A DNA stretch of 64,000 nt, taken from Pristiophorus japonicus (taxonomy: Eukaryota). The translations under genes were made by a program, and so were the position numbers. A model generated the notes under the pieces. That model ran no database searches. It had not been told where the DNA came from and was given only the letters and a program-made list of their open reading frames with translations. The stretch is from contig NC_091995.1 in assembly GCF_044704955.1 (NCBI RefSeq), forward strand, positions 17,918,001 through 17,982,000, in the 5' to 3' direction. Shown here piece after piece: positions 9,250 to 64,000 of this stretch (position 1 is the first letter of the stretch; every line of letters begins with the position of its first letter).

Positions 9250-9290
9250 CCGATGAGGATTTCGGCACTCAGAGCTGTCATTATTCCCCT
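9250..9290 (-). other. Gene A relic 41-nt tail exon (EGNNDSSECRNPHR), downstream of the stop codon
   Basis: tttatag|41 nt|gtatgt; same length and phase (1->0) as 23886-23926 in B and 53983-54023 in C. Confidence 0.7.
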
Positions 9291-10570: not shown

Positions 10571-10594
10571 GACAGAATACACTAAAACAAAACA

Positions 10595-10955
10595 TTCGTT
10601 CGCGGAATGTGGGCTTTGCTTAGCAAGGCCAGTATTGATTGCTCATCCCTAGTTGCCCTTGGAAGGTAGCGACAATCCACCAATTCAGAGGGCAGTTAGG
10701 AGTCAACGACATTTCTGTGGGTCTGAAGTCACTTTAAGGCCAGACCAGGTAAGGATGGCAGACGTCCTTCCCTAAAGAGACATTTGACAATAGTGAACCA
10801 GGTGGGTTTTATGACAATCTGATAGTTACTAGTTTTTTTTATACCAGATTGATTTCATTTTAATGAATTTAAATTCCCCAGTTGCCATGGATTATTAGTC
10901 CAAATTTCTAGGATTTTTAAGCCAGTAACAAATCCAGTATGCTAATGTACCCGCT
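10595..10955 (-). mobile_element. SINE family 2; other copies ~25203-25578(-), 59345-59730(-), 60680-61050(+)
   Basis: Shared core (..ggtctggccta..gtgactcca..cagcaatg..) and a 3' tail matching the LINE 3' ends at 15670-15870 and 57365-58115. Confidence 0.7.
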
Positions 10956-11136
10956 AAATAATCAGACAGAACAATACTGAACTCATGGTTAATGTGTTAT
11001 AACTGATGGACAAGGAAATTAACCAGATTATTAATTAATATCAAATGAAATCGAAGGAGTAAGTATTGGGTGTCTGCTAAAAGTGACAGGTTGTAAACAG
11101 TTCTTTCTGTTACACACCTGTTTCACGGATCACTGG

Positions 11137-11152
11137 CTAGAGCGGATCTATT
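11137..11152 (-). CDS. Gene A last coding exon (35-nt exon 11152-11118; K-IDPL-stop)
   Basis: tgttgctccag|35 nt|gtgtgt; TAG at 11139-11137 aligns to TAT (Tyr) in B. Confidence 0.7.
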
Positions 11153-14100
11153 CTGGAGCAACAGAGGACATCAGCAAAGTGATGCATTCACAAAATAAAA
11201 TACGCTGAAGAAATAGAAAGTGGATTCTTAAAAAGTAGTTCTATGTAAACAATTACTTCCTGGGTTGCTGAAGAGCGACTGTGAGCAGGGGAAGACAAAG
11301 AACAGTCAAAGAGCTGAGGTTATTGATTATTTCAGTCGCTTCTTATAGATATTAATTAGTATCGAATAAATTGAATCACATTTTGTGGGCAATTTTAACC
11401 AAATCCACGGAGGAACGGACGGGATCGGGTGCAACGTTGGGTTCACATTCCGCCTGATTTTGAAATAAGTTGGCGAGCAATATAGGGCGGTATTGAACCC
11501 GGCGTTTCATCTGATTCGGTTGGTTTCCCATCCGGTGCATTAAGATGAAATTACCAAAGAATTTGTCAATCACAAGGAATTCAGTAGGGTTCCAATTAGT
11601 GCTGTTACCTGTCTTACGACGCCGGCTGGCAACAACTAAAGTGACTATAACCATGATCAGGAGAGGCACGGCTCGCACAGCAAAGACGAATGGTGTGATC
11701 TTTAGATTGGACTGGCCGTTGCTGCCCTCTTCACCATCTGTGTGTAATTGTTAAGGTTCATTGTGAGACAGACCAGTCAAGAGCAGGGCAATGATCAAAT
11801 TGAGATTTAGCATCAGCAAATGTGACACGGATACTAATCCCTCTTGATATGGGCGATTATATTCATACTTAACATTGGCATACTTCAAACAAGGCCATCG
11901 ATTAAAATGCAAAATGTCACCGGTGGTCAACTGCAGCGTTTCCTTTCCTTGAAGTAACACTGGGAGAATTTTAATGTAAGGATGCTTAGTGGGCTGGTAC
12001 CCAAATCGTTTATTTTAAAAGGGATGTGGTTGGGGTGGGGAAGGGGGGGACGGGGCGGGTGGGTGTGGACGACCGTGTGAGTTCCGTTATCATAGGAAAA
12101 GTAATACGCTATTTAACCCCTCAAGCTTGCTCCGCCATTCAATGAGATCATAGCTGATTTGCAACCTAACTCCATATTCCTGAGTGCCTTTGTTTAACAA
12201 AAAGTTATCTATCACAGATTTTAAATTTACAATTGACTCAGTATCAATTGCCATTTGTGAAAGACAGTGCCAAACTTCGACCACCTATTGTGTGTAGAAG
12301 TGTTTCCTAACTTCGCTCTTGAAAAGTCTGCTTCTAAATGTTAGACTATGCCTCCGGTCCTAGAATCCCCAACTAGCTGAAATAGATTATCTGCATCTTT
12401 CCTATGTGTTACCCTTAATATCTTGAGAGTGTTGCTCCTCCCGCCGAGTTTTCCTGAATTCACTAGACCCTGGAGATTCATGCGGCCCCGAGCACGAACG
12501 AGAAAATTGTCCCCTCATACTTATGGGATGCTTAAGACAAACATCTTGATATTAGATTGCCGAATCTTGGTGGTCAACGCGGTTCTTTCGTGAATCCATC
12601 TTTGCATTTAGATGGACCGCAATGTATTCATTTCTATTGACACACATAACTCTATCTGCCTCTACATCCATTTACAGGCTGGCAATGACATCTAACTTAT
12701 CGACGGATTGACCTGTTATTCCTAATATTGACACGCTGCAATTTCAAGGCTCACGTGTTGCTCTCGGAAAGGGTCTGCAGTTTTCGCCTTACACACTGCA
12801 ACTGCGTTGACCACTGGTCTATAGCCCTACATAAAATGATACCCAACTGAATCTCATTAATATCATCCATCTATTTATTCTAAAAGAAATAATTCTCAGT
12901 ATACGGGCGTCTCGGGCAAGGTTGGCTTTAATTGCCCTTCCCTAATTGCCCTTGGTAAGATTTTGGTTGGCCTTCTGCTTGAACCGCTGCAGTCTATGAG
13001 GTGAAAGTGAACCCACAGTGCTGTTAGGGAGTAGTTACAGGATTTTTAAAGGAACTGCGATACAAGGTCAAGTCAGGATGGCGTGTGACTTGGAGGAGAA
13101 ATTGCTCCCATGCAGCTGCTGCCCTTATCCTTCGAGGTGGCGTTGGTCGCGGGTTTGGGAGTTCCAATTGATTTAATGGATCATTTGGCTATATTGACAA
13201 TATTATTCCCTCCAATCCCATATGATTGCGTTCAATTGCATTCGTAAGAATATCTCCACCAATCCAAACTTACCTTGATCACCATGTTTCACGAGAAGTA
13301 TTGTGCCTGTTCCGTATGCAGTACCGATTCGCGCGAGCTCCACTTTGCAAATATAGAAACCTGTATCTCGGAGGCCCAGTTGGATTATTCTAATAGACGC
13401 TTTTTTCCTTTGGCGGAAATCCTCTTCGTCTGCGCGGAACACTCTACCTCTGTATTCGTCTGTGCTGTTGGAAACTTCAATTCCATGTTTGGAGCCTCGG
13501 TGCCATTTGTAGCCGCCGATTCCTGCGGGACCTTCGTATGTACAGACCAGGTCCGCTGTCTGACCCACGGTTTTGGTGAGAGATTGCGGGCTCTGAAATA
13601 CTGCGATGTTTCCACCATTAACTGTGGAAATGGGAAAAACAGACCATTTATAAATAGGCAGTGCACGTCTTTGCGTTAAAGCACGCCGTGGAAAGCCTCG
13701 TTTTAATCACATATCCTTCTGAGTATTTTGGGTAAGGTATTAATGGCCTTTAATTTGGGGTATAATAAACAGAAAATGCTGGAAATACTCAGCAGTTCGG
13801 GCAGCATTTGTGGAGAGAGAGCAACAGAGTTAACGTTCCGGGTCGATGGCCTTTTACCAGACCTGGAAAACAGGTAGAGATGTGCCAAGTTTTGAGCAAG
13901 TGCAGGGAGCAAGGAAAGAGGGGAGGGGCGGAAAGAAAAGGGAAGGTCTGTGATAGGGTGAAAGGCAGGAGAGATTAATTCACAAAAGGAATGAAGGTGC
14001 AAGGCATAAGGAGATTGTAATGGGACAAGTAATGAAACAAAAGGTGTCTGGAAGAGGTATAAATGGTTAACTTGAGGAACATTGGAACTGGAAATGGAGT

Positions 14101-23885: not shown

Positions 23886-23926
23886 CCGATTTGGTCTTCT
23901 GCTCCCAGAGCGGTCATTATTCCCCT
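23886..23926 (-). other. Gene B relic 41-nt tail exon (EGNNDRSGSRRPNR)
   Basis: tttatag|41 nt|gtatgt; homologous to 9250-9290. Confidence 0.68.
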
Positions 23927-25740: not shown

Positions 25741-25775
25741 CTGCTTTACAGACCGCTGCATAGACCGGATCTAGT
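25741..25775 (-). pseudogene. Gene B relic 35-nt Tyr-motif exon (LDPVYAAVCKA), donor mutated GT>GA
   Basis: ttttttgcttcag|35 nt|gagggt; homologous to 11118-11152; lies after B's stop codon. Confidence 0.68.
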
Positions 25776-25884
25776 CTGAAGCAAAAAAGAACACCAGAAA
25801 GGTTAGGCATTCAAAAAAAATACATTGAAGAGAAAGAAAGTGGATTCTTAAAAAATAGTTTTATATAAACAATTATCTCGTGGG

Positions 25885-28800
25885 TTAACGAAGAGCGACT
25901 GTGAGCAGGAGAAGACAAAGATAGAACAGTTAAAGAGCTGAGGTTATTGATTATTTCAGTCGCGTCTTACAGATATAATTGGTATCGAATGAATTGAATC
26001 ATATTTTGAGGGCAATTTTAAACAAACCTACGGAGGAACGGACAGGATCGGGTGAAACTTTGGTTTCACACTCCGCCTGATTTTGAAATCAGCTGGCGAA
26101 CAATATTGGCAGGATTAAACCCGGTTCGTTTCCCACCCGGTGCGTTAAGATGAAATTACCAAAGAATTTGCCAACCACATGGAATTCAGTAGAGTTACAA
26201 TTAGTGCTGTTACCTCTCTTACGACGCCGGCGGACAACAACTACAGTGATTATAACAATGATCAGGAGAGGCGCTGCATAGACGAGTGGCCGTTGCTTTG
26301 CTTTGGACTGGCCGTTGCTGCCCTCTCCACCATCTGTGTGTAAATATAAAGGTTCATTGTGAGACAGAGCAGTCAAGAGCAGGGTAATGTTCACATAGAG
26401 ATTTAGCATCAGCAAATGTGACACAGATTCTAATCCCTCTTGAAGTGGGCGGATATATCCACACTCAACACTGGCAGACATCAAACTGGACCATCGCTTA
26501 AAATGCAATATGTCACAAGTGGTCAACTGGATTGTTTCCGACCCTTGAAGTAATACTGGGAGAATTTTAATGTAGGAATGCTTAATGAGTTGGTACCAAA
26601 TGCATTGATTTTAAACGGGATAAGGTGGGGTTGGAGCTGGGGCGGCCGTGTGAGTTCCGCTATCATAGGAAAGGGTTAAGCCATTTAACCCCTCAAGCCT
26701 GCTCCGTCATTCAATGAGATCATAACTGATTTGCAACCTAACTCCATATTCCTTAGTGCCTTTGTTTAATAAAAATATATCAACCACAGCAATTAAATAT
26801 GCAATTTACCCAGCATCAATTGCCATTTGCGAAAGACAGTGCCAAACTTCTACCACCCTTTGTGTGTAGAAGTGTTTCCTAATTTCGCTCTTGAAAAGTC
26901 TGGTTCTAAATTTTCGGCTATGCCCCCGGTCCTAGAATCCCCAACTAACTGAAATAGTTTATCTGCATTTTCCAATCTGTTCCCCTTAATATCCTGAGAG
27001 TGTTGCTCCTCCTACCGAGTTTTCCTGAATTCACTAGACCCTGGAAATACAGGCGGCCACCCCAGCACGAACGAGAAAATTATCCCCTCATAATTATGGG
27101 ATGCTTAAGACAAAATGAACATGTAGATATTAGATTGCCGAATCTGGGTGGTCAACGTATTTATTTCGTGGTCCCAACTTTGCAATTGGATGGAGCGCAA
27201 TATATTAATTCATATTTACATGCACAAATCTATCTGCCTCTATCTCCATTACAGGATGGCAATGAAAGCGAACTTAACATTGATGTGTTGACATGTTTAT
27301 TACTAATATTGGCACGTTGCAATTTCAAGGTTCACGTATTGCTCTTTGCCTTGCACACTGTATCTGGGTGGACTACTTGTCTATAGTCCTACCTAAAATG
27401 ATACACAACTAAATTTTATGAATATCCTCCATCTATTTATTTTTGAAAATCTTTCTCAGGATACGGGTGTCACTGGCGAGGCTGCCATGTATTGCCCATC
27501 CCTAATTGCCCTGAGAAGGTGCTGGTTGGCCTTCTTCTTGAACCGCTGCAGTCCGTGAGGTGAAGGTGCTCCCACCGCGCTGTTAGGGAGGGAGTTCCAG
27601 GATTTTAAAAGGAACTGCGATACAAGGTCAAGTCAGGATGGTGTGTCAATTGGAGGGGAACGTGCAGGTGGTGGTGTTCCCATGTACCTACTGCCGTTAT
27701 CCTTCGAGGTGGTGGAGGTCGCGGGTTTGGGAGTTTCAATTGATCGAATGGATCATTGACCTATACGGCCAATATTACTCCCTAGAAAAATAGCATACGG
27801 TTGTGTGCAATATCATTCGTAAGAATAACTCCACCAATCCAAACTTTGGTCACCACCTTGCACGGTCAGTGTTGTGCCGGTTCCGTATACTTCACCGATT
27901 TTCACGAGCTGTACTTTGCACAAATATAACCCTGTATCTCCCGGTTTCAGCTGGATTATTCTAATGGATGCGTTTTTCCTCGTGCTGAAATCTTCTCTAC
28001 TTGCCCCCAGGACCCTGCCGCTGTATTCGCCTGTGCTGTTGGAAACTTCAATTCCATGTTTGGAGCCTCGGAGCCAACTGTAGCCGCCGATTCCTGCGGG
28101 ACCCTCATATGTGCAGCCCAGTTCCGCTGTCTGTCCCACGGTTTTGGTGAGCGATTGCGGGCTCTGAGATACTGTGATATCATAACAGTAAATGCTGCAA
28201 GTGGGTAAAACAGACGATATATAAATAAGCAGTGCACGTGTTTGCCTTAAAACACGGCGCGGAAGGATTAGTTTTAATCAAATATTGTTTTGAGGATTTA
28301 TGCTCTTTAATTGGGGTATAATAACAGAAAATTCTGGAAATACTCAGCAAGTCAGGCAGCATTTGTGGAAAAAGAGAAGCAGAGTTAACGCTCCTGAACG
28401 ATTATCTTTAGCCAGAACTGGAAACAGGTAGAGATGTGACATGTTTTAAGCAGGTGCAGGGGGCAGTGAAAAAGGGAGGGAAGAAAGAACAAAAAGGAAG
28501 GTATGTGACAGGGTGGAAGGCAGGAGAGATTAACTAACAAAACGGATGATGGTGCAAGATATAAGTCGATAGTAATGCCACAAGTAAAGAACAAAATGAG
28601 TCTAGAAGAGGTATAAATGGTTAACGAGGGATATTGGAGTTGGAAATGAAGTGACTTTCGATGTTGGGTGCATTCCTAGGTAAAGTACAGAATGGATCTG
28701 GTACAAACTATCTCTACCCCTTTCCAAATAATAAGCATTAACTTTAATTTCAGTACTCCCGATTGTGCCGCCTTGGGGTATATATAGGAATATTAAAACG

Positions 28801-43432: not shown

Positions 43433-43643
43433 TGTCATGTATGCAACACTATGTAATCAGCATTCTACCGCCACCAGAGGATGTATCTGTTGGAGTCCCA
43501 AGGGATCCCAGCATCCCTTGGGAGCATGTACATAAGCAGGCCTCCCATTCTGTACCAGCACTCTGGAGTTAAAATAAAGAGACTTAGGTCACACATATCA
43601 CGTCTACAGTAATCAATCATATTGCTTTATTCAAGACATAAAA
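43433..43643 (+). repeat. Gypsy 3' LTR
   Basis: About 90% identical to the 5' LTR by hand count (about 20 substitutions, 2 indels). Confidence 0.93.
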
Positions 43644-43800
43644 TATACACTCCCTTCATCGAACCTCCAGGTGATCTCCTCGAAAAATTCAATCAGTTTA
43701 CTCAAATAATGAGCTTCCCTTAACAAATCGTGCTGACTGTTCCAAATTAATCCTTGCTTTTCAAATGTAGAATTATCCGATCCTTCAAGATTTTTTCCAA

Positions 43801-45632
43801 AATTAAGGATAGTGTTAAATCCAAGGAAGAGGCATATAAATTGGCCAGTAAAAGCAGCAATCCTGAGGACTGGGAGAAATTTAGAATTCAGCAGAGGAGG
43901 ACAAAGGTTTAATTAAGAGGGGGAAAATAGATTTCGAGAGGAAGATTGCTGGGAACATAAAAACTGACTACAAAAGTTTTTATAGATATATGACGAGAAA
44001 ATGATTAGTGAAGACAAACGTAGGTCCCTTGTAGTCGGATTCAGGTAAATTTATAATGGGAAACAAAGAAATGGCAGACCAATTGAACAAATGCTTTGAT
44101 TCTGTCTTCACGAAGGAAGACACAAATAACCTTCCAGAAGTACTAGGGGAATGAGGGTCTAGTGAAAAGGAGGAACTGAAGGATATCCTTATTAGGTGGG
44201 AAATTGTGTTAGAGAAATTGATGGGATTGAAGGCCGACAAATCCCCGGGGCCTGATAGTCTGCATTCCAGAATACTTAAGGAAGTTGCCATAGAAATAGT
44301 GGATGCATTGTTGATCATTTTCCAACAGTCTATCGAATCTGGATCAGTTCCTATGGACAGGTGGGTAGATAATGTAACAGCACTTTTTAAAAAAGGAGGG
44401 AGAGAGAAAACGTGTAATTATAGACCAGTTAGCCTGCCATCAGTAGTGGGGAAAATGCTAGAATCAATTATTAAGGATGAAATAGCAGTGCATTTGGAAA
44501 GCAGTGACAGGATCGGTCCAAGTCAGCACGGATTTATGAAGGGGATATCATGTTTGACAGACCTTCTGGAATTTTTTGAGGATGTAACTAGCAGAGTGGA
44601 CAAGGGAGAACGAGTGGATGTGGTTTATTTGGACTTTCAAAAGGCTTTTGACAAGGTCCCAAACAAGAGATTGGCGTGCAAAATCAAAGCACATGGTATT
44701 GGGGGAAATGTACTGACGTGGATAAAGAAATGGTTGGCAGAAAGGAAGCAAAGAGTAGGAATAAACAGGTCCTTTTCAGAATGGCAGCCAGTGACTGGTG
44801 GGGTAGCGCAAGGTTCAGTGCTATTTACAATATTCATTAATGATTTAGATGAAGGAATTGAATGTAATATCTCCAAGTTTGCAGATGAACTGGTTGGCAG
44901 ACAGCAAGCAGAGAGTCGGGATAAACGGGTCCTTTTCAGAATAGCAGACAGTGACTAGTGGAGTCCTGCAGGGCTCAGTGCTGGGACCCCAGCTCTTTAC
45001 AATGTATATTAATGATTTAGATGAAGGAATTGAGTGTAATATCTCCAAGTTTGGAGATGACACTAAACTGGGTGGCGGTGTGAGCTGTGAGGAGGACGCT
45101 AAGAAGCTGCAGTTTGCCTTGGACAAGTTAGGTGAGTGGGCAAATGCGTGGCAGGTGCAGTATAATGTGGATAAATGTGAGGTTATCCACTTTGGGGGCA
45201 AAAACACGAAGACAGAATATTATCTGAGTGGCGTCAGATTAGGAAAAGGGGAGGTGCAAAGAGACTTGGGTGTCATAGTCATTTGTCATTGAAAGTTGGC
45301 ATGCAGGTGCAGCAGGTGGTGAAGAAGGCAAATGGCATGTTGGCCTTCATAGCTAGGGGATTTGAGTATAGGAGCAGGGAGGACTTACTGCAATTGTACA
45401 GGGCCTTGGTGAGGCCTCATCTGGAATATTGTGTTCAGTTTTCGTCTCCAGTCTGAGGAAGGACGTTCTTGCTATTGAGCGAGTGCAGCGAAGGTTCACC
45501 AGACTGATTCCCAGGATGGTGAGACTGACATATGAGGAGAGAGTGGATCAACTGGGCCTTTATACACTGGAGTTTAGAAGGATGAGATGAGATCTCATAG
45601 AAACATATAAGATTCTGACGGGACTGGACAAG
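43801..45632 (+). mobile_element. CR1 ORF2 fragment with an internal ~160-bp tandem duplication; cut by the ERV LTR
   Basis: [25 protein letters not shown] then jumps back to WLADSKQRV; ends ggactggacaag|TG. Confidence 0.92.
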
Positions 45633-47332: not shown

Positions 47333-48294
47333 TCATCACTATACGCGACAGCCATGGTATTACCACTCGTTGCCACTTTGCTTCCACTGCAATCAGAGTG
47401 ATCGCCCGTATCCCGAATGAGAATCGCCCAAACGAGATTTGTGTGGGGTTCCCTTTAAAACGTCCATCTCAATAATATGTTCCTTTACTGCCGATATTAA
47501 GACCATTACCCAGCATGGAGGCTCATTTCCCAACGCCATTCTGTTAGTTGTTCAGCCAGCCGTCGTTTCTGCCCCTCAGAACCCATTAATCATCCTACGG
47601 GTCCCTGTCTGTTTCCTAGGATTTCCATGGACAATAGTAACTTCTGCCCCTGTGTTTACTAAAGCAACATCTCTTTGTATATCCCCCCCCACTCCCCCCA
47701 CCAATATATTGTCATCGGAATGTGTGGCCTCGGGTCTGCGAGAGCTTGGGTTGATGTGGTTCTAACGGGGAGTACTCCTGGATCCCGGCCACACCCCTAG
47801 TCGAGGGAATTACTAGCCTTCTACAGCTCTTCTACGTTGGAGTATAGGCTAGTGGGAAGTGGTTTATCCACATCCACAGACTTATCGCTATCCAACTTAA
47901 TCTCACTTACCTCCCTCCTTTCACCCTACCCTGTTCCCGAAACGCAGTGTTGCTTCCACATAGAATACATCGCTCCTGTTGGGATTCCATCAATTATTTC
48001 CATGGGGACCCCTGCCTTCAGTAAAGCTGCGAACATGTCCCTCCGCGTAATTCTTTTTTTGTCTTTCCTGACCCTGTACCTTTCCCAGAAGTCCATACTA
48101 TTAATTGTTTGCATACCTTGAATCTGACTGAATTATTGTCACTGGCACCCAAGTGCTCTCCCACTAAAAGCCCTTCTACCTGCCCAGCTTAATTCTCCAA
48201 AACTAAATCGGAAACTGCCCTTCTCGTGTTGGGCTTGCTCCATACTGACTAAAAAAGTTATCTTGAATGCATTTGAAGAATATCGCATTTTACG

Positions 48295-51402: not shown

Positions 51403-54400
51403 CTAGAGTCCTGTAAGTGTTAGGGAGAGATGGTTCAACGCCACTGGGTTAGGGATAGAGCATTAGCTAGATCTTGCAAAGTCATTGGACGTTCATAGAT
51501 AATGTAACAGAAATGGCTTGTGTGTGGGACTGTGTTGCTTACAGGATAGCACGGTTACAGCAAAGAAGGAGGCAATTAGGTCTGTTGGAGCGGATTTTTG
51601 GACATATACCTGACTAGTATATGGGACCAAACATTTGTTTTTATTTTCCCCTTTAATGAATTTTGTAAGTGAGAATACTGATGCATTATGCTTTATATAA
51701 AAAAACAGTTAGACTTCAAGGTATGCTGGCCTTGAGTTATGGAGATAGGAAAGTGAGATAATGAATGACTGGAGAGATAATTAAGTGGGATGTTTGTCTA
51801 TACCGGTGCCAAAAGGCCTGCACTTGTTTATAATGCCCTGTCACAATGAAGGCTGGTTTATATCAAGAACTCAGCCTTGGATAGTAAACCTTGTAATGCG
51901 ATGATTAGACTTAAGGACTAATGCTAAAACATGTGATGTAAAGTGACGTAATTTGTAAGATAAAAGAACCTCACTGGAGATACCAAAGGGAGAAGTGGTT
52001 CAGAGACAGGGGTCTCTAACACTTCTCCCAAAGCTTTGTCTCCGATTTAATAAACCTCTCTTTATATATTATACAGTCTCGGAAATATTTTTCCATAACA
52101 GATCCGTTGAACCTGTGCAGGTTCTCTGCAAGAGCACTTCAGCTAGTCCCACTCCCCTGTCCTGTCCCCGTTACAAGAATGTAAGAACATAAGAACATAC
52201 GAAATAGGAGCAGGATTAGGCCATTTGGCCCCACGAGCTTGCTCCACCATTCAATAAGATCATGAGTGATTTGACTATGGACTCAGCTCCACTTCACTGC
52301 CCGCTCCCCATAATCTTTTACTCCCTTATCGCTCAAAAATCTGTCTATCTCCACCTTAAATATATTCAATGGCTCAACTTCTACAGCTCTCTGGGGCAGA
52401 GAATTCCATAGATTTAAAACCCTCTGAGAAAAGACATGCCTCCTCATCTCAGTTTTAAATGGGTGGCCCCTTATTCTAAGACTATGTCCCCAAGTTTTAG
52501 TTTCTCCTATGTGGAAATATCCTCCCTGCATTCACCATATCGAGCTCCCTCATTATCTTATAAGTTTCCATAAGATCATCTCTCATTCTTCTGAACTCCA
52601 ATATGTATAGTCCCAAACTACTCAATCTATCCTCATAAGGCAACCCCCTCATCTCCAGAATCAATGTAGTGAACCTTCTCTGAACAGCCTCCAATGCAAG
52701 TATATCCTTCCTTAAATATAGATACAAAAATTGTACACAGTACTGCAGGTGTGGCCTCAGCAATACCCTGTACAATTGTAGCCGGACTTCTCTGCTTTTA
52801 TACTCTATCACCCTTGCAATAAAGGCCAAGATTCCATTTGCCTTCCTGATTACTTGCTGTACCTGATACTAACGTTTTGTGTTTCATGCACAAGGACCCC
52901 CAGGTTTGTCGGACTGCAGCACTTTGCAATTTTTCTCCATTTATATTAGAATTTGCTGTTCTATTATTTCTGCCAAATTGGATAGCCTCACATTTTCCCA
53001 CATTATACTCTATCCGCCAAATTGTTGCCCACTCACTTAGCCTGTCTATATCCCTTTGCAGATATGTTGTGTCCCCCTCACAATTTGCTTTCCCACCCAT
53101 CTTTGTATCATTAGCAAACTTGGCTACGTCACACTCGGTCCCTTCATCTAAGTCATTAATATAGATTGTAAATAGTTAAGGCCTCTGCACTGATCCCTGC
53201 GGCACTAGTCACTGTTTGCCAACCGGAAAATGACCCATTTAACCTAACTCTCTGTTTTCTGTTAGTTAACCAATCCTCTATCCATGATAATATATTACTT
53301 CCAACCCTTCAATAAATACCGATGAAATGCTTATGACTGATAAAAACAGGTGGAAGAACTGCTTTTATCAGCGTAATATCTGCTTTTATCAGTGTAAGAC
53401 ATTTAAAGAACAGGAACATATTTTTTTAAATAATGTAAACATTTAAACACCTATTAAATAAGATAAGTTTATTGCTGGAGCCTTTTACGTTTGAATTTTA
53501 AAACATAATTAAATTCCAATTTGATTAATTTTAAATAAGGTTGAATTTTAAAACATAATTAAATTCCAATTTGATTCATTTTAAATAAGGTATTTTTTTA
53601 ACATTTATTTTAAGTGTTTGTCTATTGTTTTGCAGCTCGCTGCAAGTATGAATGGGGATCCCCTACTTGGATTAGTTGGACCGGCCCACGTCAACCCAGG
53701 TTCACATACCAAGCCCTTAAGCTCCTAGGATACATGGGTCTCTGCGAAGGCCTTCACGTACAGTCCTATCTCCGGGAACACCAGGTAAGTTCGTATACAT
53801 TTTGCAGGTCGGAAGCATCCATCCGCGGGAAGTTTCTGTCCGCAATTTGTGCGCCAATATGGCGTTCTTCACACTGAGGCACATTTCGTTTTTACCTGAT
53901 GTGGAGCTGTGTGCCTAAACTATGCTTCATTGACATTAAACACATTAGATGCCTGAATTCCAGTCATTGTAAGTTTACTTACCACAAAGTTAGAATCAGA
54001 CACATCGACTGAGCTAGCCATACCTATAATTTGTGAAAAGGAAGAAAATATGCGGATTTGAACAATTTACGGCGGTGATTTGTTACCTGTCCAAACGACG
54101 GATCTTGGAAGCAACCTTCCAGAGAAATCGAATCGAAAGTATGGCTCGAAGCAAAACTATTCCATAAAATTTAATAGCCGTATGAAAACATTCACTGTAC
54201 ATAGATGTGTAAAGTCAGAAGCACGCAGTCTGTTTACACAGCATATCGGACCGTTAATATAGCGAAAATGAAAAGTAACGTATTTCAAACAAAAGGAGAG
54301 GGTACATTATTAGGAATACATTCTAACAGGCACCAATGTGTTCACAGTAATTATAGCCATAGACTTAGTGTTACTTATATTAAGGAGTGCCCTTTATTAC

Positions 54401-57400
54401 GGTTGAATGCTAGCCGGACTAATGAATGTCGCACCAATGTGTTATATATTGAAAGGCTAATATAGACAATTTGTACGTAACTTGAACGTAACAAACCGGA
54501 ACAATCCTTACCATTTGGGTAGATATCGTCATAGATCTCGTCATCGCTAAACCATAAAGGGAGGAAGAAGCAAATGATTACGTGTTGAAAACATCCTGCA
54601 CAGGTCAGAGAAACATAAAGGCAGCAATATGTCACAGAGAGACCTACGCACCATTGCAGAGTTTGGGAGAAGTCTGTGGAAACACAAAAGGAACAAACAA
54701 CAAAATCGTAACTCTGTTATATCTGAAACCATATTTAGCACAGCTGTAGTTTAAAGCGCGTCACAGTTTTTTTTTAAATCATTTGTCTATTATAAATAAT
54801 AAATCTTTATCTACGGGCAGTGGGAGTGGAAAGGGGTTAGTGCAGTTGGATCTCATTCCATTATGCAACCCAGTCTCATCAAACTTTCGGGTAAGTGCAT
54901 CCTTTCTCGCTTTCGAGAAGGACAATGTGTAAAGAGAGTTTAGGACGGTTGCGAGCCAGAATCCAATGCGCGTGGTTGAACTGAATTTAATGAGGAGGCG
55001 GTTATTTGCACTGTGTCTGGCTGATTGGTACTCCGCCATCACATGACCTGATTGTTAATTGGTCCCCTTGGAGGATAATTCTCACCCAGAAGTTTCTCTG
55101 GAGTGCGTAATTGGAACCGCAGCCCAAGTTCTGAGTGACTTTGCAGAGTGTCATTCGAGCCATTATGACTTCAGAACTCCTCTGCAAGCAGCCAGAGAGG
55201 ATAGAGATCACAGCAAAAGCCTCCCAAACCCTTGTCCCCAGCCCAAGTGCATGCCTCCACTCCCCCCAGCCGCAGTCCCGGACATCCCAGCCCAAGTTCA
55301 TCCCTCATCTCCAGCCCGTGCTGCATTCCTAGCCGAAGTCCATTACCTCAGCGCGAGTGCTGCCTCCCCCAGCCGAAGTCCCTTACCCAAGTGCAAGTGC
55401 ATGACCTTAACTCCCACCGTAGTTGGGGCATTTTGTGTCGGTCATGGATTGTTAATAGGTTTATTGGGTAGGAAGTGAACAGTGACAGTTTAGTCACTTC
55501 CAGATTTCATCCACTGTGGGTGTAAAGGGGGTTTGTAGAATATGAGACATCTTCCCTGAACGCTCTCCCTTCCAATCCCCATCCTGCTTCCCCATCTCTC
55601 TCTCTCCCCATCTCTCACTCCACTCTCTTTCTCCCCCGACTTTCTCTCTTCCCCCCCCCCCCTCCGCCCCCATGTTTGTCTCCTCTTCCCCGACGTTTCT
55701 CTCTCCAGTCTTCCTGCCCGCCCCCGTTGTCTTTCTCTCTCCCCCGTATGTCTCTCTCCACCCGCGTATCTCTGTACTTCCTGGTGTCTCTCACTCCACG
55801 CCCCCCCCCCCGCAGTGCCTCCTTCACCCACCCCCCATGTCTCTCTCCCCCTGCAATGTCTCTCTCTCCCTCCCTCATGTCTCTCTGTCCCCTCCCCCCT
55901 TCACCGTGTCTAACTCTGTCACCCCTACCTGCCCACTCGCCGCCTCTATCACCGCCCAACGCCTCTCTCTACCCAGCCCGCTCTCCCCCCGCCCGTTCTG
56001 CCGCCTCCTCGCGCTCCCTGCCCGCCACCTCTCTCCCCACCCGCTGCCTCTCTCTCCCCGCCCATCTGTTGTCTCTCTAACCCCCGCCCGGTCGCTCCTC
56101 TCTCCCCGGCCGCCGTCTCTCTCCCCTTCCGCCATCTCTATCCCCCCCGCCGCCCGCCGCCTCTGTCTCTCTCCCCCACTATGTCCGATGTTTTCTCTCC
56201 CACAGAAGGCCGCAATAATGCAAAGACTGGAAGCAACGTTTCAGCAGCGGATTACATGCGGACTCATCGGAGCCCCACTTTCAGTTGCGATTTCTGCTCC
56301 GAGTCTGCGCATGCAGGAGAGGCATCGGTGCAGAGGACGCAGGTGCAGAAAAAACACAATGCATATCGGCACTCAGATATAAATAAGCATAAAAGTGAAA
56401 ATGTGTGCCTGATCCAACAAATCAAAAGAGCTGTCATACTGACAAAACAAAAATAATTCTTCAGAGTTTGTTGCTAAAGTATAGCATTGCCGATGCATTT
56501 GCTACCTCGAGAATTGACACTGATGGCGAGCCTCCCACATTCTACCCTACGTAAAGTAGAGGTGATCGAAATCTCGGCTGCCCATATCCTGACTCACACC
56601 AAGTCCCACACACCCTTCTGCTCGATTGGCTCTGTGTTAAGCAACTGCTCGATTTCAAAATTCCCATCTTTATTTACAAATCCCTCCATGGCCTTGCTCA
56701 TCCCTATCTCTATAATCTCCTCCAGCCCAAGAGCCGCCCCTCCCAGAGAGATGCGCTCCTCTAATTCTGTCCTCATGAGCATCCCTGATTATAATTGCTC
56801 AAACATTGGTGGCCGTGTCTGTAGCTGCTAGGAACCTAACTTCTGGAATTCCCCACGTAAATCTCTCTGCCTCTCTCCCGCTTTCCTCTCCTTATGACGC
56901 TCCATAAAAGCTACCTCTTTGACCAAGCTTGTGTTCATCTGCCCTAATGTCTTTTTACCTGGCTCGGTGTCAAATTTATTTTTTTGTTTTATAACACTCC
57001 TGTGAAGCGTCTTGGGACGTTTTACAACGTTAAAGGTGCTATATAAATACACGTTTTTGTTGTTATTATGGAGCACAGGGAACTCTATTTTCCTGGCGGG
57101 CGCAATAATTCAATAGCCCTCTAACAGTGGTTGTTGCTGATGCTGTCGCCAATTTTAAACTAAGGCCGGGCAGCAAACCCGCAGATCGGGTGGAACGTCG
57201 GTCTTACACTCCACATGATATCAACCTCCATTGACTTCAATGGTGAGTATAATCAGGACAGGGTGTAAAACCCATATTTCTCCCAATCTCATCAATTCCC
57301 GATGGTCGGGTGAGGTTATAATTGGCCCACGAGGTCAAGAACACAAGGGAAAGGGTATTACATCTCCAACAAGCGAGAGTCTAACCACCGCCCCTGAGAG

Positions 57401-60400
57401 TCAATGGCATTACCATCGCCGAATCCTCACCATCAACTTCCTGGGGGCATCAACATTGACCAGAAACTTAAATGGCCCAGCGACTTAATACTGTGGGTAC
57501 AAGAGCAGGTCAGAGGCTGGGTATTCTGCAACGAGTGTTTCACCTCCTGACGGCCACCCGGCCCCCCACCTGCACCGCGCCCCAAAGTATTTCTACCTCC
57601 AACAAGGCACAATTCAGGAGTGTAATAGAATTTCTCCACTTGCCTGACTGAGTGCAGCTCCAACAAGACTCAAGAAGCTCGACAGCATCCAGGACAAAGC
57701 AGCACGCCTGATTGGCACCCCATCTACCACATTAAATGTTCACTCCCTCCACCCCCAGCTGCAATGTGTACCATCTGCAAGATGCATGGAGCAACTCGCC
57801 AAGGCTTCTATGGCAGCACACCCCAAACCCACAACCTCTACCTAAGAGGACAGGGGCAGCAGGCGCATGGGAACACCGTCACCTGCAACTTCCCCTCCAA
57901 GCCACACACCATCCTGAATTGGAAATATATCGACCATTCCTTCATCATCACTGGGTCAAAATCATGGAACTCCCTATCAGCACCGGGAGCAGAAGACCTT
58001 CTACGTAAGGACTGCAGCGGTTCAAGAAGGCAGCTCACCGCCAAGGTTAATTAAGGAAGGCCAATAAATGCTGTCCTCAACAGCAACGTCCACATCCCAG
58101 GAACAAATACAAAAAATAGCAAGCAGCAAGCTACTGAGGTTGTTCCTCAGCAATTCACACACGTATAATATTGAGGACTCATTGAAATTTGTCAACTGGG
58201 AAAATTAAGTGATTCTTTAATCGGCGGTGCTCACCATCTACATCAGTGTCATCATAGAGCGGCCCGTTCCTTAGGGACAACAGACAAATACAGAAAATTA
58301 GTGCCACAGCATAGTTAGTAAACTAACTATAGAACAATTATAATACAACAGGTTGAAAATTTAAACTCTGAGATTCACTGACCTTCCAAATTGCGGGGGA
58401 ACATCTGTAAAAATAAAGTTAAGCATGAAAGATTTGTAGCGTTAATGCAATTTGTCTAAAGACATTTTGAGTACAGGAAACTGTTTCCATTTGCGGGAGG
58501 GTTAGTAACCTGAGGACATAGATTTAAAATAATTGGCAAAAGAACCAGAGGGGAGTTGAGGAGATTTGATTTATGCTGTGAGTTGTTATGATATGGAGTG
58601 CACTACCTGAAAGAATGGTAGAAGCACGATCCCTTCATCTACTGCACCCAGATGTTCTTTTCCTAACACCCCACCCCCGCTCCCCGCCCTTCGCAGGTTC
58701 CAGCCCAGATGTTCTCACCTTCCATCCCACCCAACATGCTCCGGCCTGATATATTCTGTTCCTTTCCCCTGCTTCCCCGGCTCGATATTCTCTCCCTCAC
58801 CTCCTCGATGCTCCTTCGGCGATATTCTCTACCCCGCCGCCCCACCCCATGCTCCAACCCCGATCTTCTCTCACCGCACCGCCGCCCCACGCCCCGCCGC
58901 CCGATGATCCTGTCCTGAACTTCTCCACGATGTTCCAGCCCCGTTGCTTCCATCCCTCATCCCCAATCCTCCTCCGGCCAGCGAACCTCCCCCTCCCACT
59001 ATTGCACGCATCTGATCCGCCCCCCACCCAACCTCTCTGTAGTTTGGTGCCACAGGCCTCTCCATCTAGGTGGCTGCGGGTGGGGAATCAAAGGTTGGAA
59101 ATGAAAATCAGGCCCCACCGTTAAGTTCAGCAGAGCTCGCGGTAAACCCGTCCCCGCGGGTTTCTCAGCCGCTTTCATGCACCTCTGCCTCCCGATTAAA
59201 ATTCAGGCCATTGTATCATGCAATCTCCTACCCTAGTGAGACCAGTTAGTTCGGTGTGTCTCACTGATCCAAACACTGGCTACCACTGGTACTGTGATTC
59301 AGTAGTACACCAGAGCAACGTAAACGCTACGCATGTTTTTTTTTGTATTCGTTCACTGGATGTGGGCATTAACTGGCAAGGTAATAGTTATTGCTCATCC
59401 CTAATTGCCCACGAGAAGGTGGTGTTGAGCTGCCTTCTTGAACAACAGAGGGCAGTTAAGAGTCGACCAACATTGCTGTGGGTCAGAAGTCACATATAGG
59501 CTAGACCAAGTATGAATGGCTGATGTCCTTCCCTAAAGGACATTCGTGAGCCAGATGGGTTTTTATGACAATCCGGTTGTTTCATGGTCACCATTACTGA
59601 TCCTAGCTTTTTCAGTCCAGATTGATTTAATTAACTGAATTTAAATTCCCCAGCTGCCATGGTGGGATTTTTAAAACTCGTGTCTCCGGATCACTAGTCC
59701 AGTAACATAATCACTATGCTACCATTCCGCGTGTGCATCACTCACCAGCTGGATTAATTTCATCACAGGTGCGAAAAGCGCTCTCCATCCAGGGGCTGGG
59801 AAAGAAGAAAAGAAAATCACATAGCTAGGGGAAAAAAAATCCAGCTAATTAAATAACGTTTTACCCTCTATAACCACGAACCAACCTTTGTGCTTGCGGA
59901 GCTAACTCTGTGGGATTAAAACTCAAAAATTAAGGTTTATCCATTGATGCAAGCAAGACATTTGATACTGTGAAAAAAGATTAAAATTATATAGACCTCT
60001 TATGTCCATCTAGGAACAATAATCAGTAAAACTACTGAAGTCCTTTCCGAACAATAATTGGTAATTAAAAAAATAATGCTTAAATGACTATTTAATATAT
60101 CGACCACTTAAATACTCACCATTAAAATGAATGTTACTGCAAGGCGCAATATTGCTTTGGGATTAAAACAGAAAAGTGAAAAGGTGTCAATGGATTGCAT
60201 ACCTAAATGCATATCAATTCAATAAAAACACCAAGAGAAGTGTCATCTTCACTTCAATATTCATTGACCGTTGTAAGCGTGCAAGGTCGAGGGCTGCAGG
60301 AATAAAAGGTGATGTAGAAAGTGTTACAACTTAACTACGGGCTTGTGGTAGCTTAATGGTTATAAGAACATAAGAACAGAAGAAATAGGAGCAGGATTAG

Positions 60401-63400
60401 GCCATTCGGCCCATCGAACCTGCTCCGCCATTGAACAAGATCATGGCTGACCTTCGGTCTCAGCTCCAACTTCCCGCCCGATATCCATATACGGTGATTC
60501 CCCATGAGCCAAAAATCTATCCCGCTCTGTCTTGAATATACTCAATGACTGAGCATCCGCAGCCCTCTGGGCTTAATAATTCCGCAGATTCACAATCAAT
60601 GGAGTGAAGAAATTTCTCCTCATCTCAGTACTAAAGGAGACTCCCCAGGCAATGGAAACATCCCTCAGCGTCTGCTCTGTTATGATAGTGGACATAATGC
60701 AGAGGCCTGTAGTAATGATGTGAAAACATGAGCTCAAATCCCAACACGGCAGCTGGTAAGGAATTTTTATTCAGTTAATTAAATAAATCTGGAACAAAAA
60801 GCTTGTATCAGTAATGGTGACTATGAAACTACCGGATTGTCGTAAAAACCAGTCTGGTTCACTAACGTCCTTTAGGGAAGGAAATCTGCCTTCACCCAGT
60901 CTGGCCTATAAGTGACTCCAAACCGACAGCAATGTGTTGAGTCTTAATAGGTCTCTGAAATGGCCTAGCAAGCCACCACCAATGTGGCTCACTATCACCT
61001 CCTGGAGGGCAATTAGGGATGGGAAATAAATGAATAAAAAATAAATAAACTTTTCATATTTGAATGTACAGCTTTCCAACTACAGTTCGGTCAAGATCAG
61101 CTAATGGTTTCAACTGAACGATAGCAGTATCGTTTATATAATAAGCCGACTCAATCCCTAACCATCTGCAAATGCTTAGTATTAAATATAATAATGTAAT
61201 ATAATTTCTGTACATAAACTGCAAGCAGCTCACTGCAAATCGTGAATGTAAAAGGAATAATCTAAGAATTGCTGTTAATTATATTTACGGAGGGACACTA
61301 GCTTCATAATGGAATATGGAATTTTTCGAATTCTATTTTGACAATGTGAATTCATTCATCCATTAACAAGGCAGGAAAGCTAAATATCACACCAATCAGC
61401 TAAAGGTTCATTTCCGAATTTAGCCCGGCTTATTTTCTAACCTATTCACGCAAAACGTATTTATCCTGATAAAACAGTGCAATTTGAACAAGTCACTTAT
61501 GAGCTAAACGAAAGTCATCATTCATGCTAAATCACAAAGCAAAAAGACACATTATAGAGCAGTAGAAAAACATTTATACATCATTTTTGAATACAACATG
61601 TTTTTTTTGGGGGGGGCGCGGGTAGGTTTACTAACCTCCGAAATTGTAGGCGATAAATTGTAGAAATCAAAATTAACAATTAATTTGAATAGATACAACA
61701 CTAAAATCAGAGTATCTGGCCATTATAATATTACTGTGTGTGGGAGCTTGCTGTGCTAAAATTAGCTGCCGTGTTTCTTGCATTACAACAGTGACTACAC
61801 GTTAAACGAAGTACTTCTTGATTAAGGCGCTTTGGGAAGTCCGGATATCGTGAAAGGCCTATATAAATGCAAGTCTTTCTTTATAAAAACATCAAAGGTT
61901 TTAGCGCAAACCAAATGTCACTGGCATTAGCTTGCATTTGTATGAATGTATCTACTTTGTGGATATATCCGGAAGCAAAATATTGTTCTTTACAATATTT
62001 ACCTTTTCTCATACCGCAAACTGCGGAGAACATGAGGAAAGCGGCTAAAGCTCCAGCAATGATGTACACGGATGTGAAGCTGAACTGTGACGCCTCGGAT
62101 TTCTCTGTGGTCGGTTTTCCTGGTCGGAAGACAAAATAAGAGATTGGTTTCACCCAGAACACCACTTGCTACCTCCCACTTTCCCTGCGAGTGAATGTAC
62201 ACTGTGCCCCGAAACCAACCAATATATATCGTAATTTCAATGGACTGATGCAGTCGTGCTGGTTTTATCCATCTCTCCTACGTTTGCTGATTGGGCTTGT
62301 GATATTAGTTATTTATATTTTATTATTTTAACGGCTTTTTAAAAATTAATTAAAGTCAATTGTTATCGAAAATATATCGTGACAAAACTCTTAAAGATTA
62401 TAATCTCGTGATTGAATTAGCTGTTCTCAGTACTCTACGCGTTTTTTATGTGTCAGAGTGTATGCATATGTGTTAATGTAGGCATATGTGTTAATGTAAG
62501 CTTGTGTGTGAGTGTTTATATGTGTGTGTATGCATGCGTATCTGCGTGTGAGTGTGTATCCGTGTGTATATGTGTGTGTTTGTGTCTGTATATCTGTCTG
62601 TGTCTGTATCTCTGTTTGCATATCTGTGTGTATATGTGTATGTATGTGTGTGTATGTGCGTGTGTGTGTATAGCTGTGTGTGCACATGTGCGTGTGTGTG
62701 TGTGTATTTGTGCGTGTGTGCATGTGTCTGGGTGTATGAGTGCGTTATTCTATGGGTGTGTGTTTGTATGCGTGTGTGTCTGTATGTGTAAGTTTGTGCA
62801 GACTATCATAACTTTTTAATAAATGTTTTGGTGATAAAGTGGAGATATTTATTAAACACAAAGGGAGACATGCTTATAACCCATGCATCCGGACATAGAA
62901 ATAGAAATAATAACAGAAAAAAATAACAGAAAATGCTGTATTTACTCAGCAAGTCAGATGGCGTCTATTGAGAAAGAAACAGAATTATCGTTTCAGGTCG
63001 ATGGACTTGAGTCAGTATTGGAAAAAAAAGTTAGAGGTGTAACAGATTTTAAGCCATGCGGGGCAGGAATGTGGGGACGGAGGAAAGAATAAAAGAGAAG
63101 GCCTGTGATAGGCAGAAGTGATTATATGACAGAAGGTATGATAGGACAACGCAAAAGTCATAGAAATATAATATTTTCCTCATTTTCATTAGGTTGACAT
63201 ATTTTCTTTACGTGTAAGATCCTCCAAGTTTAGTCTGCTGTGATATAGTAACGGACTGACCGACTCGGGAATTATGGTGGAAAAGTTTGCAAGAAGCAGT
63301 CAACTCACGCAGTACATTAAGCATTGTTCCTTGTCCGTATGTTTCGGCCACTTCCATTAGTTCCACTTTGCAGTAGTAATTCCCTGAATCATACTGTCTC

Positions 63401-63647
63401 ACGTCTTTGATAGAAATGGAAGCGTCCCTCCTTTGCGTGAAATCCTCGGCACTTGCCCGGGATAGACGCCCGCTGAATTCCGTCGTTTGGTCGCTGACTT
63501 CAGGTCCACCTTTAAAGTTTTTGTGCCAATTGAAATTACCGACCCCTGGAGGCCCTTCATGCGTGCAGTTCATGAGCACCGACTGCCTCTCCGTGGCGTT
63601 AATGAAGGACGGGATTTTAATTACTTTGATGTTGTCTGCAGCAATTC
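51403..63647 (-). CDS. NCR3-like: Gene C (5' partial): NKp30/NCR3-like IgV receptor with uncharged TM and long Tyr-motif tail; exons 63647-63309, 62119-62003, 60293-60269, 60154-60120, 59907-59886, 59795-59746, 58404-58383, 58269-58235, 54673-54652, 54546-54512, 54023-53983, probably 53914-53896 and 51410-51403
   Basis: Every exon is flanked by AG/GT, and the phases chain without a stop: tail RK-ALDLARLQ-RNIAPCSNIHFN-ELAPQAQ-SPWMESAFRTCDEINPA-DVPPQFG-RNGPLYDDTDVD-DFSQTLQ-CDDEIYDDIYPN-GMASSVDVSDSNFV-AHSSTS-GL*; the last two exons are less certain; no leader exon found in the window. Confidence 0.8.
51583..52100 (+). mobile_element. Solo LTR inserted in a CR1 3' tail
   Basis: TGTT..AACA ends, AATAAA at ~52049, flanks ggtc/gatc (imperfect 4-bp TSD); flanks rejoin into a CR1 tail. 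Confidence 0.72.
52185..53310 (-). mobile_element. CR1 3' portion
   Basis: LQRDIDRLSEWA..GKCEAIQFG, RPHLQYCVQF, GHSLRIRG, (TAAGAACA) tail. Confidence 0.92.
53491..53590. repeat. 50-bp AT-rich tandem duplication
   Basis: ttgaattttaaaacataattaaattccaatttgatt(a/c)attttaaataagg x2. Confidence 0.9.
53983..54023 (-). CDS. Gene C 41-nt tail exon (GMASSVDVSDSNFV)
   Basis: ttttcttccttttcacaaattatag|41 nt|gtaagt. Confidence 0.78.
54512..54673 (-). CDS. Gene C micro-exon module 4 (22 nt 54673-54652 + 35 nt 54546-54512; DFSQTLQ-CDDEIYDDIYPN)
   Basis: tttccacag|..|gtgcgt; tggtttag|..|gtaagg; 105-nt intron. Confidence 0.83.
55560..56180. repeat. C/T-rich low-complexity tract
   Basis: Mostly (CT)n and Cn on the + strand; the overlapping long ORFs are low-complexity. 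Confidence 0.85.
56570..57065 (+). mobile_element. L2 LINE 3' fragment
   Basis: ..DWL..KQLLDFKI....FTNPSM, ..FWNSPRK.., tail tgtgaagcg..ttgggacgtttt..taaaggtgctatataaat. Confidence 0.72.
57365..58115 (+). mobile_element. LINE 3' fragment (RT C-terminus)
   Basis: Frameshifted ..IDQKLKW..AGQRLGILQRV..RSVIEFSPLA..KLDSIQDKAARLIG. Confidence 0.75.
58235..58404 (-). CDS. Gene C micro-exon module 3 (22 nt 58404-58383 + 35 nt 58269-58235; DVPPQFG-RNGPLYDDTDVD)
   Basis: tttttacag|..|gtcagt; tccctaag|..|gtgagc; 113-nt intron. Confidence 0.83.
59746..59907 (-). CDS. Gene C micro-exon module 2 (22 nt 59907-59886 + 50 nt 59795-59746)
   Basis: atcccacag|..|gttggt; tttcccag|..|gtgagt; 90-nt intron. Confidence 0.78.
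60120..60293 (-). CDS. Gene C micro-exon module 1 (25 nt 60293-60269 + 35 nt 60154-60120)
   Basis: ttcctgcag|..|gtcaat; tcccaaag|..|gtgagt; 114-nt intron. Confidence 0.75.
60363..60640 (-). mobile_element. CR1 3'-end fragment
   Basis: (TAAGAACA) tail and ORF2 end. Confidence 0.78.
62003..62119 (-). CDS. Gene C stalk + transmembrane exon
   Basis: tcttccgaccag|117 nt|gtaaat; RKPTTEKSEASQFSFTSVYIIAGALAAFLMFSAVCGMRK; no charged TM residue. Confidence 0.85.
62445..62795. repeat. Degenerate (TG)n microsatellite
   Basis: Alternating purine-pyrimidine tract of ~350 bp. Confidence 0.92.
63309..63647 (-). CDS. NCR3-like: Gene C Ig V-set (VJ-type) exon, NKp30-like
   Basis: ttggcag|339 nt|gtgagt; MNCTHEG..VGNFNW..EVSDQTTEFSGRL..DVRQYDSGNYYCKVE..YGQGTMLNVL. 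Confidence 0.93.
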
Positions 63648-64000
63648 CTGCCAATAGATGATGATATGTGATTAGCAAGACGCACCGAGTTCTAACTTCA
63701 TCTGAACCAAGTGCTGAAGATGCGGGAGGCCTCCAGTGAAGAGGCCAGAGGGACCGTGCCAATCCGGACAGTCAGTGGTGAAGGGACATTCGAAATGCAG
63801 TAACCTTGATCCCGCTGGGTGTGTTTTTCCAAGGCACCGCGCCATAGTTATGGCCTTATTAGCATGGGAGGATTACGAGACCACCAGTGCACGGACAGGC
63901 ATTTCCAATCAATTAACTTTAGCCGTTTTCTCACAACCCGCCCCGCTGCAGGAGTGGTGGCGTGGGGCCTCGGAAAATAAAATGGATTGGTTACAGCACA

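Follow-up and report, generated by a model that had tools for sequence, protein, structure and literature searches.

How an immune receptor can acquire a long signalling tail from exons so short that open reading frame (ORF) calling misses them is the question raised by a 64,000-nucleotide (nt) stretch of the Pristiophorus japonicus genome (contig NC_091995.1, positions 17,918,001 to 17,982,000; the whole stretch is hereafter called the window). The window contained three tandem minus-strand receptor genes, here designated A, B, and C, each with a single immunoglobulin variable (IgV, or V) exon and a single transmembrane (TM) exon; the remainder was transposons only. A first-pass annotation had proposed that the cytoplasmic tail of gene C is built from repeats of a two-micro-exon module. 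Our analysis favors this proposal: with a probability of about 80%, gene C is an NCR3-family receptor whose tail consists of four tandem two-exon cassettes, duplicated from a single 22+35-nt unit. The exons of gene C were placed as follows.

63309..63635, minus strand: IgV exon of gene C, VJ-type (V joined to a joining, J, segment), 327 nt, phase 1 to 1, with J-like YGQGTMLNVL and the donor GTGAGT preceded by C
62003..62119, minus strand: stalk/TM exon, 117 nt, phase 1 to 1, membrane span without a charged residue
60269..60293, minus strand: exon a of cassette 1 (25 nt), LDLARLQ, with the weak donor GTCAAT; horn shark counterpart PAPEPVGLQ, the length difference being a multiple of 3
60120..60154, minus strand: exon b of cassette 1 (35 nt), NIAPCSNIHFN, with Cys where the tyrosine would stand; matches horn shark NIAPCSNFQFN at 9 of 11 residues
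59886..59907, minus strand: cassette 2 exon a, 22 nt, LAPQAQ; horn shark counterpart EAPQRQ
59746..59795, minus strand: exon b of cassette 2 (50 nt), PWMESAFRTCDEINPA; Cys versus Tyr in horn shark (NYDEINPA)
58383..58404, minus strand: cassette 3 exon a, 22 nt, VPPQFG; horn shark counterpart VPPPLE
58235..58269, minus strand: cassette 3 exon b, 35 nt, NGPLYDDTDVD, with the sole tyrosine in common with horn shark (NETIYHDINQD)
54652..54673, minus strand: cassette 4 exon a, 22 nt, FSQTLQ; horn shark counterpart FPPPFQ
54512..54546, minus strand: cassette 4 exon b, 35 nt, DDEIYDDIYPN; His in horn shark (DEEVHSDIPPN)
53983..54023, minus strand: 41-nt exon after the gene C cassettes, MASSVDVSDSNFV, from phase 1 to 0, with donor GTAAGT; horn shark ITDMVGSGDGADF at the equal chain position

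The eight tail exons that the first-pass annotation had placed here were all confirmed on the minus strand, bounded by AG and GT, with phases running 1 to 2 to 1. A micro-exon is an internal coding exon of 27 nt or less, and the a exons of gene C, with canonical splice sites, measured 25, 22, 22, and 22 nt. The introns within pairs were 114, 90, 113, and 105 nt long, and those between pairs were 212, 1341, and 3561 nt long. Exon chains were joined by local scripts from window coordinates for frame checks; searches used single exons or database proteins. As had been claimed, the chain from the TM exon (phase 1) through the eight micro-exons to the 41-nt exon was open throughout, without a stop. 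The first half of the tail peptide reads A-LDLARLQ-R-NIAPCSNIHFN-E-LAPQAQ-S-PWMESAFRTCDEINPA-D- and the second half reads VPPQFG-R-NGPLYDDTDVD-D-FSQTLQ-C-DDEIYDDIYPN-G-MASSVDVSDSNFV. The earlier phase arithmetic was also correct: pairs are multiples of 3 and phase-symmetric, and removal of a whole pair from the chain preserved the frame. The accompanying claim that skipping a lone exon truncates the tail held for seven of the eight exons, whose removal gave a premature stop, but not for exon 4a, whose removal gave no stop within the known exons.

The bare pattern of such exon pairs was common, with 915 open AG/GT pairs of matching shape on both window strands within modest length ranges, and it therefore carries no weight alone. 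With so many equal-shaped pairs present, the four pairs might be chance alignments of AG and GT dinucleotides, without real exons. Using a crude splice-site matrix made from textbook consensus frequencies, we found that the pairs of gene C ranked 1, 2, 3, and 5 of the 915; rank 4 was an alternative donor of the fourth pair, and lower ranks were far weaker. When the candidate peptides were aligned locally to the tail of a horn shark (Heterodontus francisci) protein, the four pairs and their overlapping variants took the top 12 places, the four pairs scoring 39-60 compared with a background median of 18. Two independent rankings, by splice strength and by horn shark similarity, selected the same four pairs, and the gene C tail peptides were collinear with a protein of another species, which leaves chance hardly credible. 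These results argue that the eight tail micro-exons of gene C are real exons.

The best single-V match of gene C was horn shark XP_067865368, 67% identical over the V domain in a search of the whole protein library and encoded by a gene with nine RefSeq isoforms. The models XP_067865360 to XP_067865369 are named inconsistently, as "natural cytotoxicity triggering receptor 3-like" or "signal-regulatory protein beta-2-like." In tblastn searches, the V exon of gene C matched XP_067865360 with 62% identity (E 1e-47), and its TM exon matched the horn shark TM exon with 45% identity (E 6e-6). After the TM segment, horn shark isoform X1 (320 residues) begins RGLQCQ-R-SNDWIYDDIPL-A-PAPEPVGLQ-S-NIAPCSNFQFN-D-EAPQRQ-S-FSSSCMDMFSNYDEINPA-D- and continues VPPPLE-R-NETIYHDINQD-D-FPPPFQ-C-DEEVHSDIPPN-D-ITDMVGSGDGADF... 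This tail was collinear with the gene C chain from exon 1a through exon 4b and on to the 41-nt exon, with NIAPCSN and DEINPA shared, and tblastn set the horn shark tail identities onto the predicted gene C exons. The lengths of orthologous exons differed by multiples of 3 (25 versus 28/31 nt and 50 versus 56 nt). Judged from these alignments, the horn shark gene of XP_067865360 to XP_067865369 is the ortholog of gene C.

The ortholog carried five cassettes and gene C carried four. The extra horn shark cassette (cassette 0) is membrane-proximal and reads GLQCQ R SNDWIYDDIP; a similar cassette (WIYDDIP) was sought between 62003 and 60293 of gene C and was not found. With the horn shark tail as the query, a word-matching search over 5.8 billion proteins returned matches to horn shark proteins only, and a gene C-type tail was present in no annotated protein of P. 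japonicus in that database. This absence fits the first-pass remark that ORF calling misses such exons.

The family of gene C was assigned from its V domain, which matched Pfam V-set with an E value of 4e-8. Among solved structures, human NKp30 was the best match (E 2e-10), ~3000-fold ahead of the next, with antibody and T-cell receptor (TCR) V domains well behind. In a HMMER search over 1.84 billion representative proteins, the best matches of the V domain were elasmobranch proteins, and the nearest database proteins of gene C included nurse shark NCR3 QTT61898 and the horn shark "NCR3-like" models. As in NCR3/NKp30, gene C has one germline-joined VJ-type IgV domain in a single exon, with a J-like GxGT motif. 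In shark and mammal the family is also linked to the MHC; the stretch examined here contained the three receptor genes and transposons only. The V-set match, the NKp30 structure match, and the NCR3 relatives together indicate that the window genes belong to the shark NCR3/NKp30 family, and we assign gene C to it on these grounds.

We then asked whether the cassettes form an array of copies. Cassettes 3 and 4 were 19 residues (57 nt) in size in both gene C and horn shark, and across the gene C cassettes exon a was 22-25 nt, exon b was 35-50 nt, and the inner intron was 90-114 nt. The b exons of non-orthologous cassettes shared the pattern [N/D]-[D/E]-x-[I/L/V/P]-[Y/C/H]-[D/S/H]-[D/E/N]-[I/F/T]-x-x-[N/D/A]. 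The in-register sum-of-pairs score of their 11-residue peptides was 124, compared with a shuffle mean of -293 (SD 74), and none of 5000 column shuffles reached 124, the register having been chosen by hand for two of the nine peptides. A single cassette was found in genes A and B, in nurse shark NCR3, and in horn shark and catshark relatives of A/B. By contrast, the horn shark neighbor gene XP_067865377/78 carried three tandem 19-residue copies, with Pro replacing Tyr, and its paralog XP_067865773 carried one. Cassette amplification has thus recurred in the shark NCR3 cluster.

The shuffle test, the same size and phase, and the 19-residue period in paralogs bear out the proposal that the tail grew by tandem cassette duplication and support a reading of the gene C tail as a tandem array produced from exon-pair duplication. 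The suggested module count in orthologs also showed that copy number varies, both between horn shark and gene C and among other horn shark genes (one versus three). Because the cassette is phase-symmetric, evolution can add, remove, or bypass copies and still leave the frame intact, and in-frame cassette gain or loss over evolution is likewise supported by the counts.

Several points weigh against this reading. A blastn search of each cassette with its flanks against the window detected no DNA similarity among cassettes or to genes A/B, the sole exception being a 21-nt acceptor match (E 0.5); the case for duplication thus rests on size, phase, the 19-residue period of paralogs, and in-register peptides. 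The hand-chosen register in the shuffle test belongs here too, as does the use of horn shark proteins that are RefSeq predictions and were compared as proteins only. A search of sequencing runs with the V-to-TM stretch of gene C listed no RNA run for P. japonicus. Within gene C, the donor of exon 1a (GTCAAT) is weak, no leader exon with a start codon was found inside the window, and no terminal exon was located within it. Only 365 nt of the window lie upstream of the V exon, and no in-frame start codon was found in them, a nearby ATG being out of frame. At the other end, one low-confidence candidate was noted.

47821..47868, minus strand: low-confidence candidate for the coding end of gene C, reading DKPLPTSLYSNVEEL then stop; similar to DKPNEKILELYSTVKKKTT, with which isoform X4 of horn shark ends

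This candidate was without a convincing acceptor, and its phase was incompatible with a direct join to the 41-nt exon; it may be what is left of the terminal exon of gene C after displacement or decay. It adjoins an LTR (long terminal repeat)-retroelement pol region.

The lack of an in-frame start codon and of a terminal exon in the window, together with the disabled cassettes of neighbors A and B (described below) and the absence of horn shark cassette 0, would also suit a gene that is unexpressed or a pseudogene in P. japonicus, its exons being genuine relics. Such a state is improbable, given that every exon from the V and TM exons through the eight micro-exons to the 41-nt exon was open with intact AG/GT, and that the leader exon may lie outside the window, as the leader exon of gene A is 1.9 kb upstream of its V exon. 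The true first exon of gene C may therefore lie beyond position 64000. At 63636-63700 (minus strand), a leader-like stretch, TRCVLLITYHHLLAGIAAD, abutted the V exon in frame and aligned to the horn shark signal peptide. The separate leader exon of gene A, MHWAAVSWAITMF, was at 15513-15551 (minus strand). A long CA/TG-rich simple repeat occupied 62420-62816, in the gene C intron between the V and TM exons.

If the gene C tail is a genuine array, the number of cassettes might also be set by splicing, as the first-pass annotation had proposed, with cells including or skipping whole cassettes and tuning the number of phosphotyrosines per receptor. The properties of the cassettes would allow this, since a whole skip stays in frame and a one-exon skip truncates; alternative micro-exons are used in the family (XP_067865396 isoform X3), and the donor of exon 1a is weak. 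However, none of the nine horn shark RefSeq isoforms skipped a cassette. These isoforms varied by TM-exon skipping, by one-codon changes at or beside cassette junctions, QCQ(R)SND and LAP(A)PEP, and by alternative 3' ends. Moreover, only two of the four gene C cassettes carry a tyrosine. Regulated cassette skipping is thus an unlikely account, and the proposal of splicing-set cassette number was not borne out in these isoforms; variation in the array is better read as gain or loss over evolution. Splicing of the array itself may rely on the inner introns, which are constant at ~100 nt compared with the transposon-invaded outer introns of 212-3561 nt. This difference suggests recognition of every a-intron-b unit, at about 150-185 nt, as if it were one ordinary exon, which would explain reliable splicing of 22-nt exons.

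We next compared the residues at the tyrosine position. Gene C has Tyr in cassettes 3 and 4 only and Cys in cassettes 1 and 2. Horn shark has Tyr in cassettes 0, 2, and 3, Cys in cassette 1, and His in cassette 4, so that the tyrosine of cassette 3 is the only one in common. The swaps of Tyr to Cys or His correspond to single-base changes (TAY to TGY or CAY). In the mechanism that we propose, each b exon carries the acidic core [D/N][D/E]x[I/L/V]-Y-[D/H][D/E]-[I/T], whose tyrosine was switched on or off by such changes. The earlier suggestion that module number sets the number of phosphotyrosine sites was therefore weakened: two of the four gene C cassettes have Tyr, one of these is common to horn shark, and the A/B copies are disabled.

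The TM exon of gene C reads FTSVYIIAGALAAFLMFSAVCG and contains no Arg or Lys, which differs from mammalian-type activating NKp30, where a positively charged TM residue serves pairing with CD3 zeta / FcR gamma, and the gene C tail, at least 96 residues long, differs from the short tail of mammalian NKp30. The tail is acidic, with 18 D+E versus 4 K+R in 96 residues. It does not contain an immunoreceptor tyrosine-based activation motif (ITAM; YxxL/I, 6-8 residues, YxxL/I), as YDDT and YDDI are 18 residues apart. Nor does it contain the tyrosine-based inhibitory motif of immunoreceptors (ITIM; (S/I/V/L)xYxx(I/V/L)), because position -2 is Pro in cassette 3 or Glu in cassette 4 and position +3 is Thr in cassette 3. 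The hemITAM of the CLEC-2 / Dectin-1 type consists of an acidic triplet just before a single YxxL. DDEIYDDI of cassette 4 has an acidic triplet and YxxI, with Ile for the hemITAM Leu, and is a resemblance only. DDEIYDDI and GPLYDDT also resemble acidic YxxI sites favored by Src-family kinases and SH2 domains.

With no basic residue in its TM exon, gene C is unlikely to signal by way of CD3 zeta or FcR gamma as in mammals. Phosphorylated YDDI/YDDT sites would instead dock SH2 proteins, and the receptor would signal via its own tail in place of the charged-TM adaptor route of mammalian NKp30. On this sequence-based reading, we infer that the gene C tail could serve as a self-contained multi-site SH2 docking scaffold.

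Genes A and B carried the following related exons.

near 13640-13290, minus strand: gene A V exon
11613-11737, minus strand: gene A TM exon
11118..11278, minus strand: gene A single cassette, with exon a at 11278-11257 (22 nt), a 104-nt intron, and exon b at 11152-11118 (35 nt)
9250..9290, minus strand: gene A 41-nt exon, GNNDSSECRNPHR; its horn shark match is TNNSSERRGTNG, part of XP_067865393
8046..8153, minus strand: gene A terminal exon, intact, two ITIM-type motifs LQYATL and VLYASV, ending in VLYASVK and a TAA stop
near 28180-27860, minus strand: gene B V exon
near 26333-26213, minus strand: gene B TM exon
25741..25898, minus strand: gene B disabled cassette, with exon a at 25898-25877 and exon b at 25775-25741 (LDPVYAAVCKA), spacing 101 nt
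23886..23926, minus strand: gene B 41-nt exon, GNNDRSGSRRPNR
about 22687-22788, minus strand: gene B terminal exon, intact, two ITIM-type motifs LQYATL and VLYSSV

The first-pass annotation had assigned genes A and B one 22+35 module each, with a 104-nt intron. The modules and the gene A spacing agreed with this, but the gene B spacing was 101 nt and both cassettes were disabled. In gene A, exon b reads IDPL-TAG, the in-frame TAG at 11139-11137 falling exactly at the Tyr codon. In gene B, exon a contains TAA, and neither exon keeps its donor (GT has become AT in exon a and GA in exon b). Given the stop codons in A and B and the lost donors in B, neither cassette appears to be a working copy. 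The 41-nt exon that had been described as common to all three genes was found in each (9290-9250, 23926-23886, and 54023-53983). Two 41-nt AG/GT candidates nearer the A and B cassettes (10332 and 24948) were rejected, as they lay within a transposon tail; the real 41-nt exons were further downstream.

Since the cassette is phase-symmetric, splicing of the TM exon directly to the 41-nt exon would stay in frame, and in genes A and B this would restore an in-frame inhibitory tail. A chain of gene B from the TM exon to the 41-nt exon and the ITIM exon would bypass the dead cassette in frame, and gene B may thus illustrate how a cassette is lost in nature with the frame preserved.

Other features were observed in and around these genes. 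The TM exon of gene A (11613-11737, minus strand) has an arginine inside its hydrophobic stretch (PFVFAVRAVPLLIMVIV), as in the adaptor-pairing Arg of mammalian NKp30; the TM exons of genes B and C are without it. In horn shark XP_067865396 isoform X3, a relative of A/B (as is XP_067865393), extra small exons encoding DHINLYDVIPPS and PPPVLQ are inserted, and the 41-nt and ITIM exons are then read in the +1 frame, replacing the ITIM tail. Micro-exons thus seem to drive a switch of reading frame in this family. The alternative exons DHINLYDVIPPS and PPPVLQ were sought in genes A and B and were not found. Much of the intergenic space was filled by ORFs for long interspersed nuclear element (LINE) reverse transcriptase and LTR-retroelement pol/integrase at 1-6000 (plus strand), 19000-20300 (minus strand), 41500-45500 (plus strand), and 52300-53200 (minus strand). 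Tails resembling short interspersed nuclear elements (SINEs) recurred in the introns of A, B, and C, e.g., at 10300-10800, 24900-25400, 59400-59700, and 60380-60450.

A broader reading, which we offer tentatively and regard as possible rather than probable, is that the 57-nt phase-symmetric two-micro-exon cassette is the copy-number unit of the signalling tails of the whole shark NCR3 cluster (one to five per gene among paralogs and species), with the tyrosine toggled by single-base changes, dead copies bypassed in frame, and the array perhaps alternatively spliced in some cell types. If true, signal strength in an ancient natural killer (NK)-type receptor family would be tunable via exon number. 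The narrower reading of gene C as an NCR3-family receptor with a duplicated four-cassette tail already provides a clear case of growth and shrinkage of an immune-receptor tail by exon-pair duplication, and it carries the practical warning that ORF-based annotation misses exons of 22-50 nt.

NKp30 is the one NK-cell receptor known to be traceable from sharks to humans, and in mammals it signals solely through adaptor chains. Gene C and its horn shark ortholog would represent members of the NKp30 family with their own long acidic multi-tyrosine tail, made from repeated 22+35-nt pairs. In the nurse shark, the NCR3 family is multigenic (accessions MT914154-61, cited in PMC12227049). Like the window genes, nurse shark NCR3 has one non-rearranging VJ-type IgV exon and one TM exon in tandem gene clusters, and QTT61898 contains a single copy of the cassette type of gene C (ATPEQLE S MSNPLYADMHD). 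Unlike nurse shark NCR3, gene C and its horn shark ortholog have four to five cassettes with acidic YDDI-type cores; they are also without the ITIM-bearing terminal exon of genes A and B. The source paper for the nurse shark NCR3 genes is reportedly that of Kinlein et al. 2021 (Immunogenetics 73:333), which PMC12227049 and PMC10450919 cite. Literature text searches, whose coverage did not extend to the key shark NCR3 papers, found no description of a gene C-type tail or its exon structure. PECAM-1 and FCRL-type tails are spread over many very short exons, some of them alternatively spliced, but unlike those of gene C, these exons are not known to form a repeated phase-symmetric pair.

The ITAM units of TCR zeta, FcR gamma, CD3, and CD79 are like the gene C cassette in that a tyrosine motif lies on a pair of small exons and has increased in number through exon duplication. 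Three ITAMs are present in TCR zeta, and FcR gamma of Xenopus laevis has gained a second ITAM via an extra exon (PMC4536121). Two-exon tyrosine modules and their duplication are thus already known from TCR zeta and FcR gamma, and the gene C tail overturns nothing. The two systems differ in their details. In ITAM units, the boundary between the exons falls within the first YxxL/I module, and every unit has two tyrosines, 7 residues apart; in gene C, the boundary is five codons upstream of a lone tyrosine, the tyrosines of adjacent cassettes are 18 residues apart, and the motif is not an ITAM. With these differences, the closest known parallel to the gene C cassette is the two-exon ITAM unit of TCR zeta.

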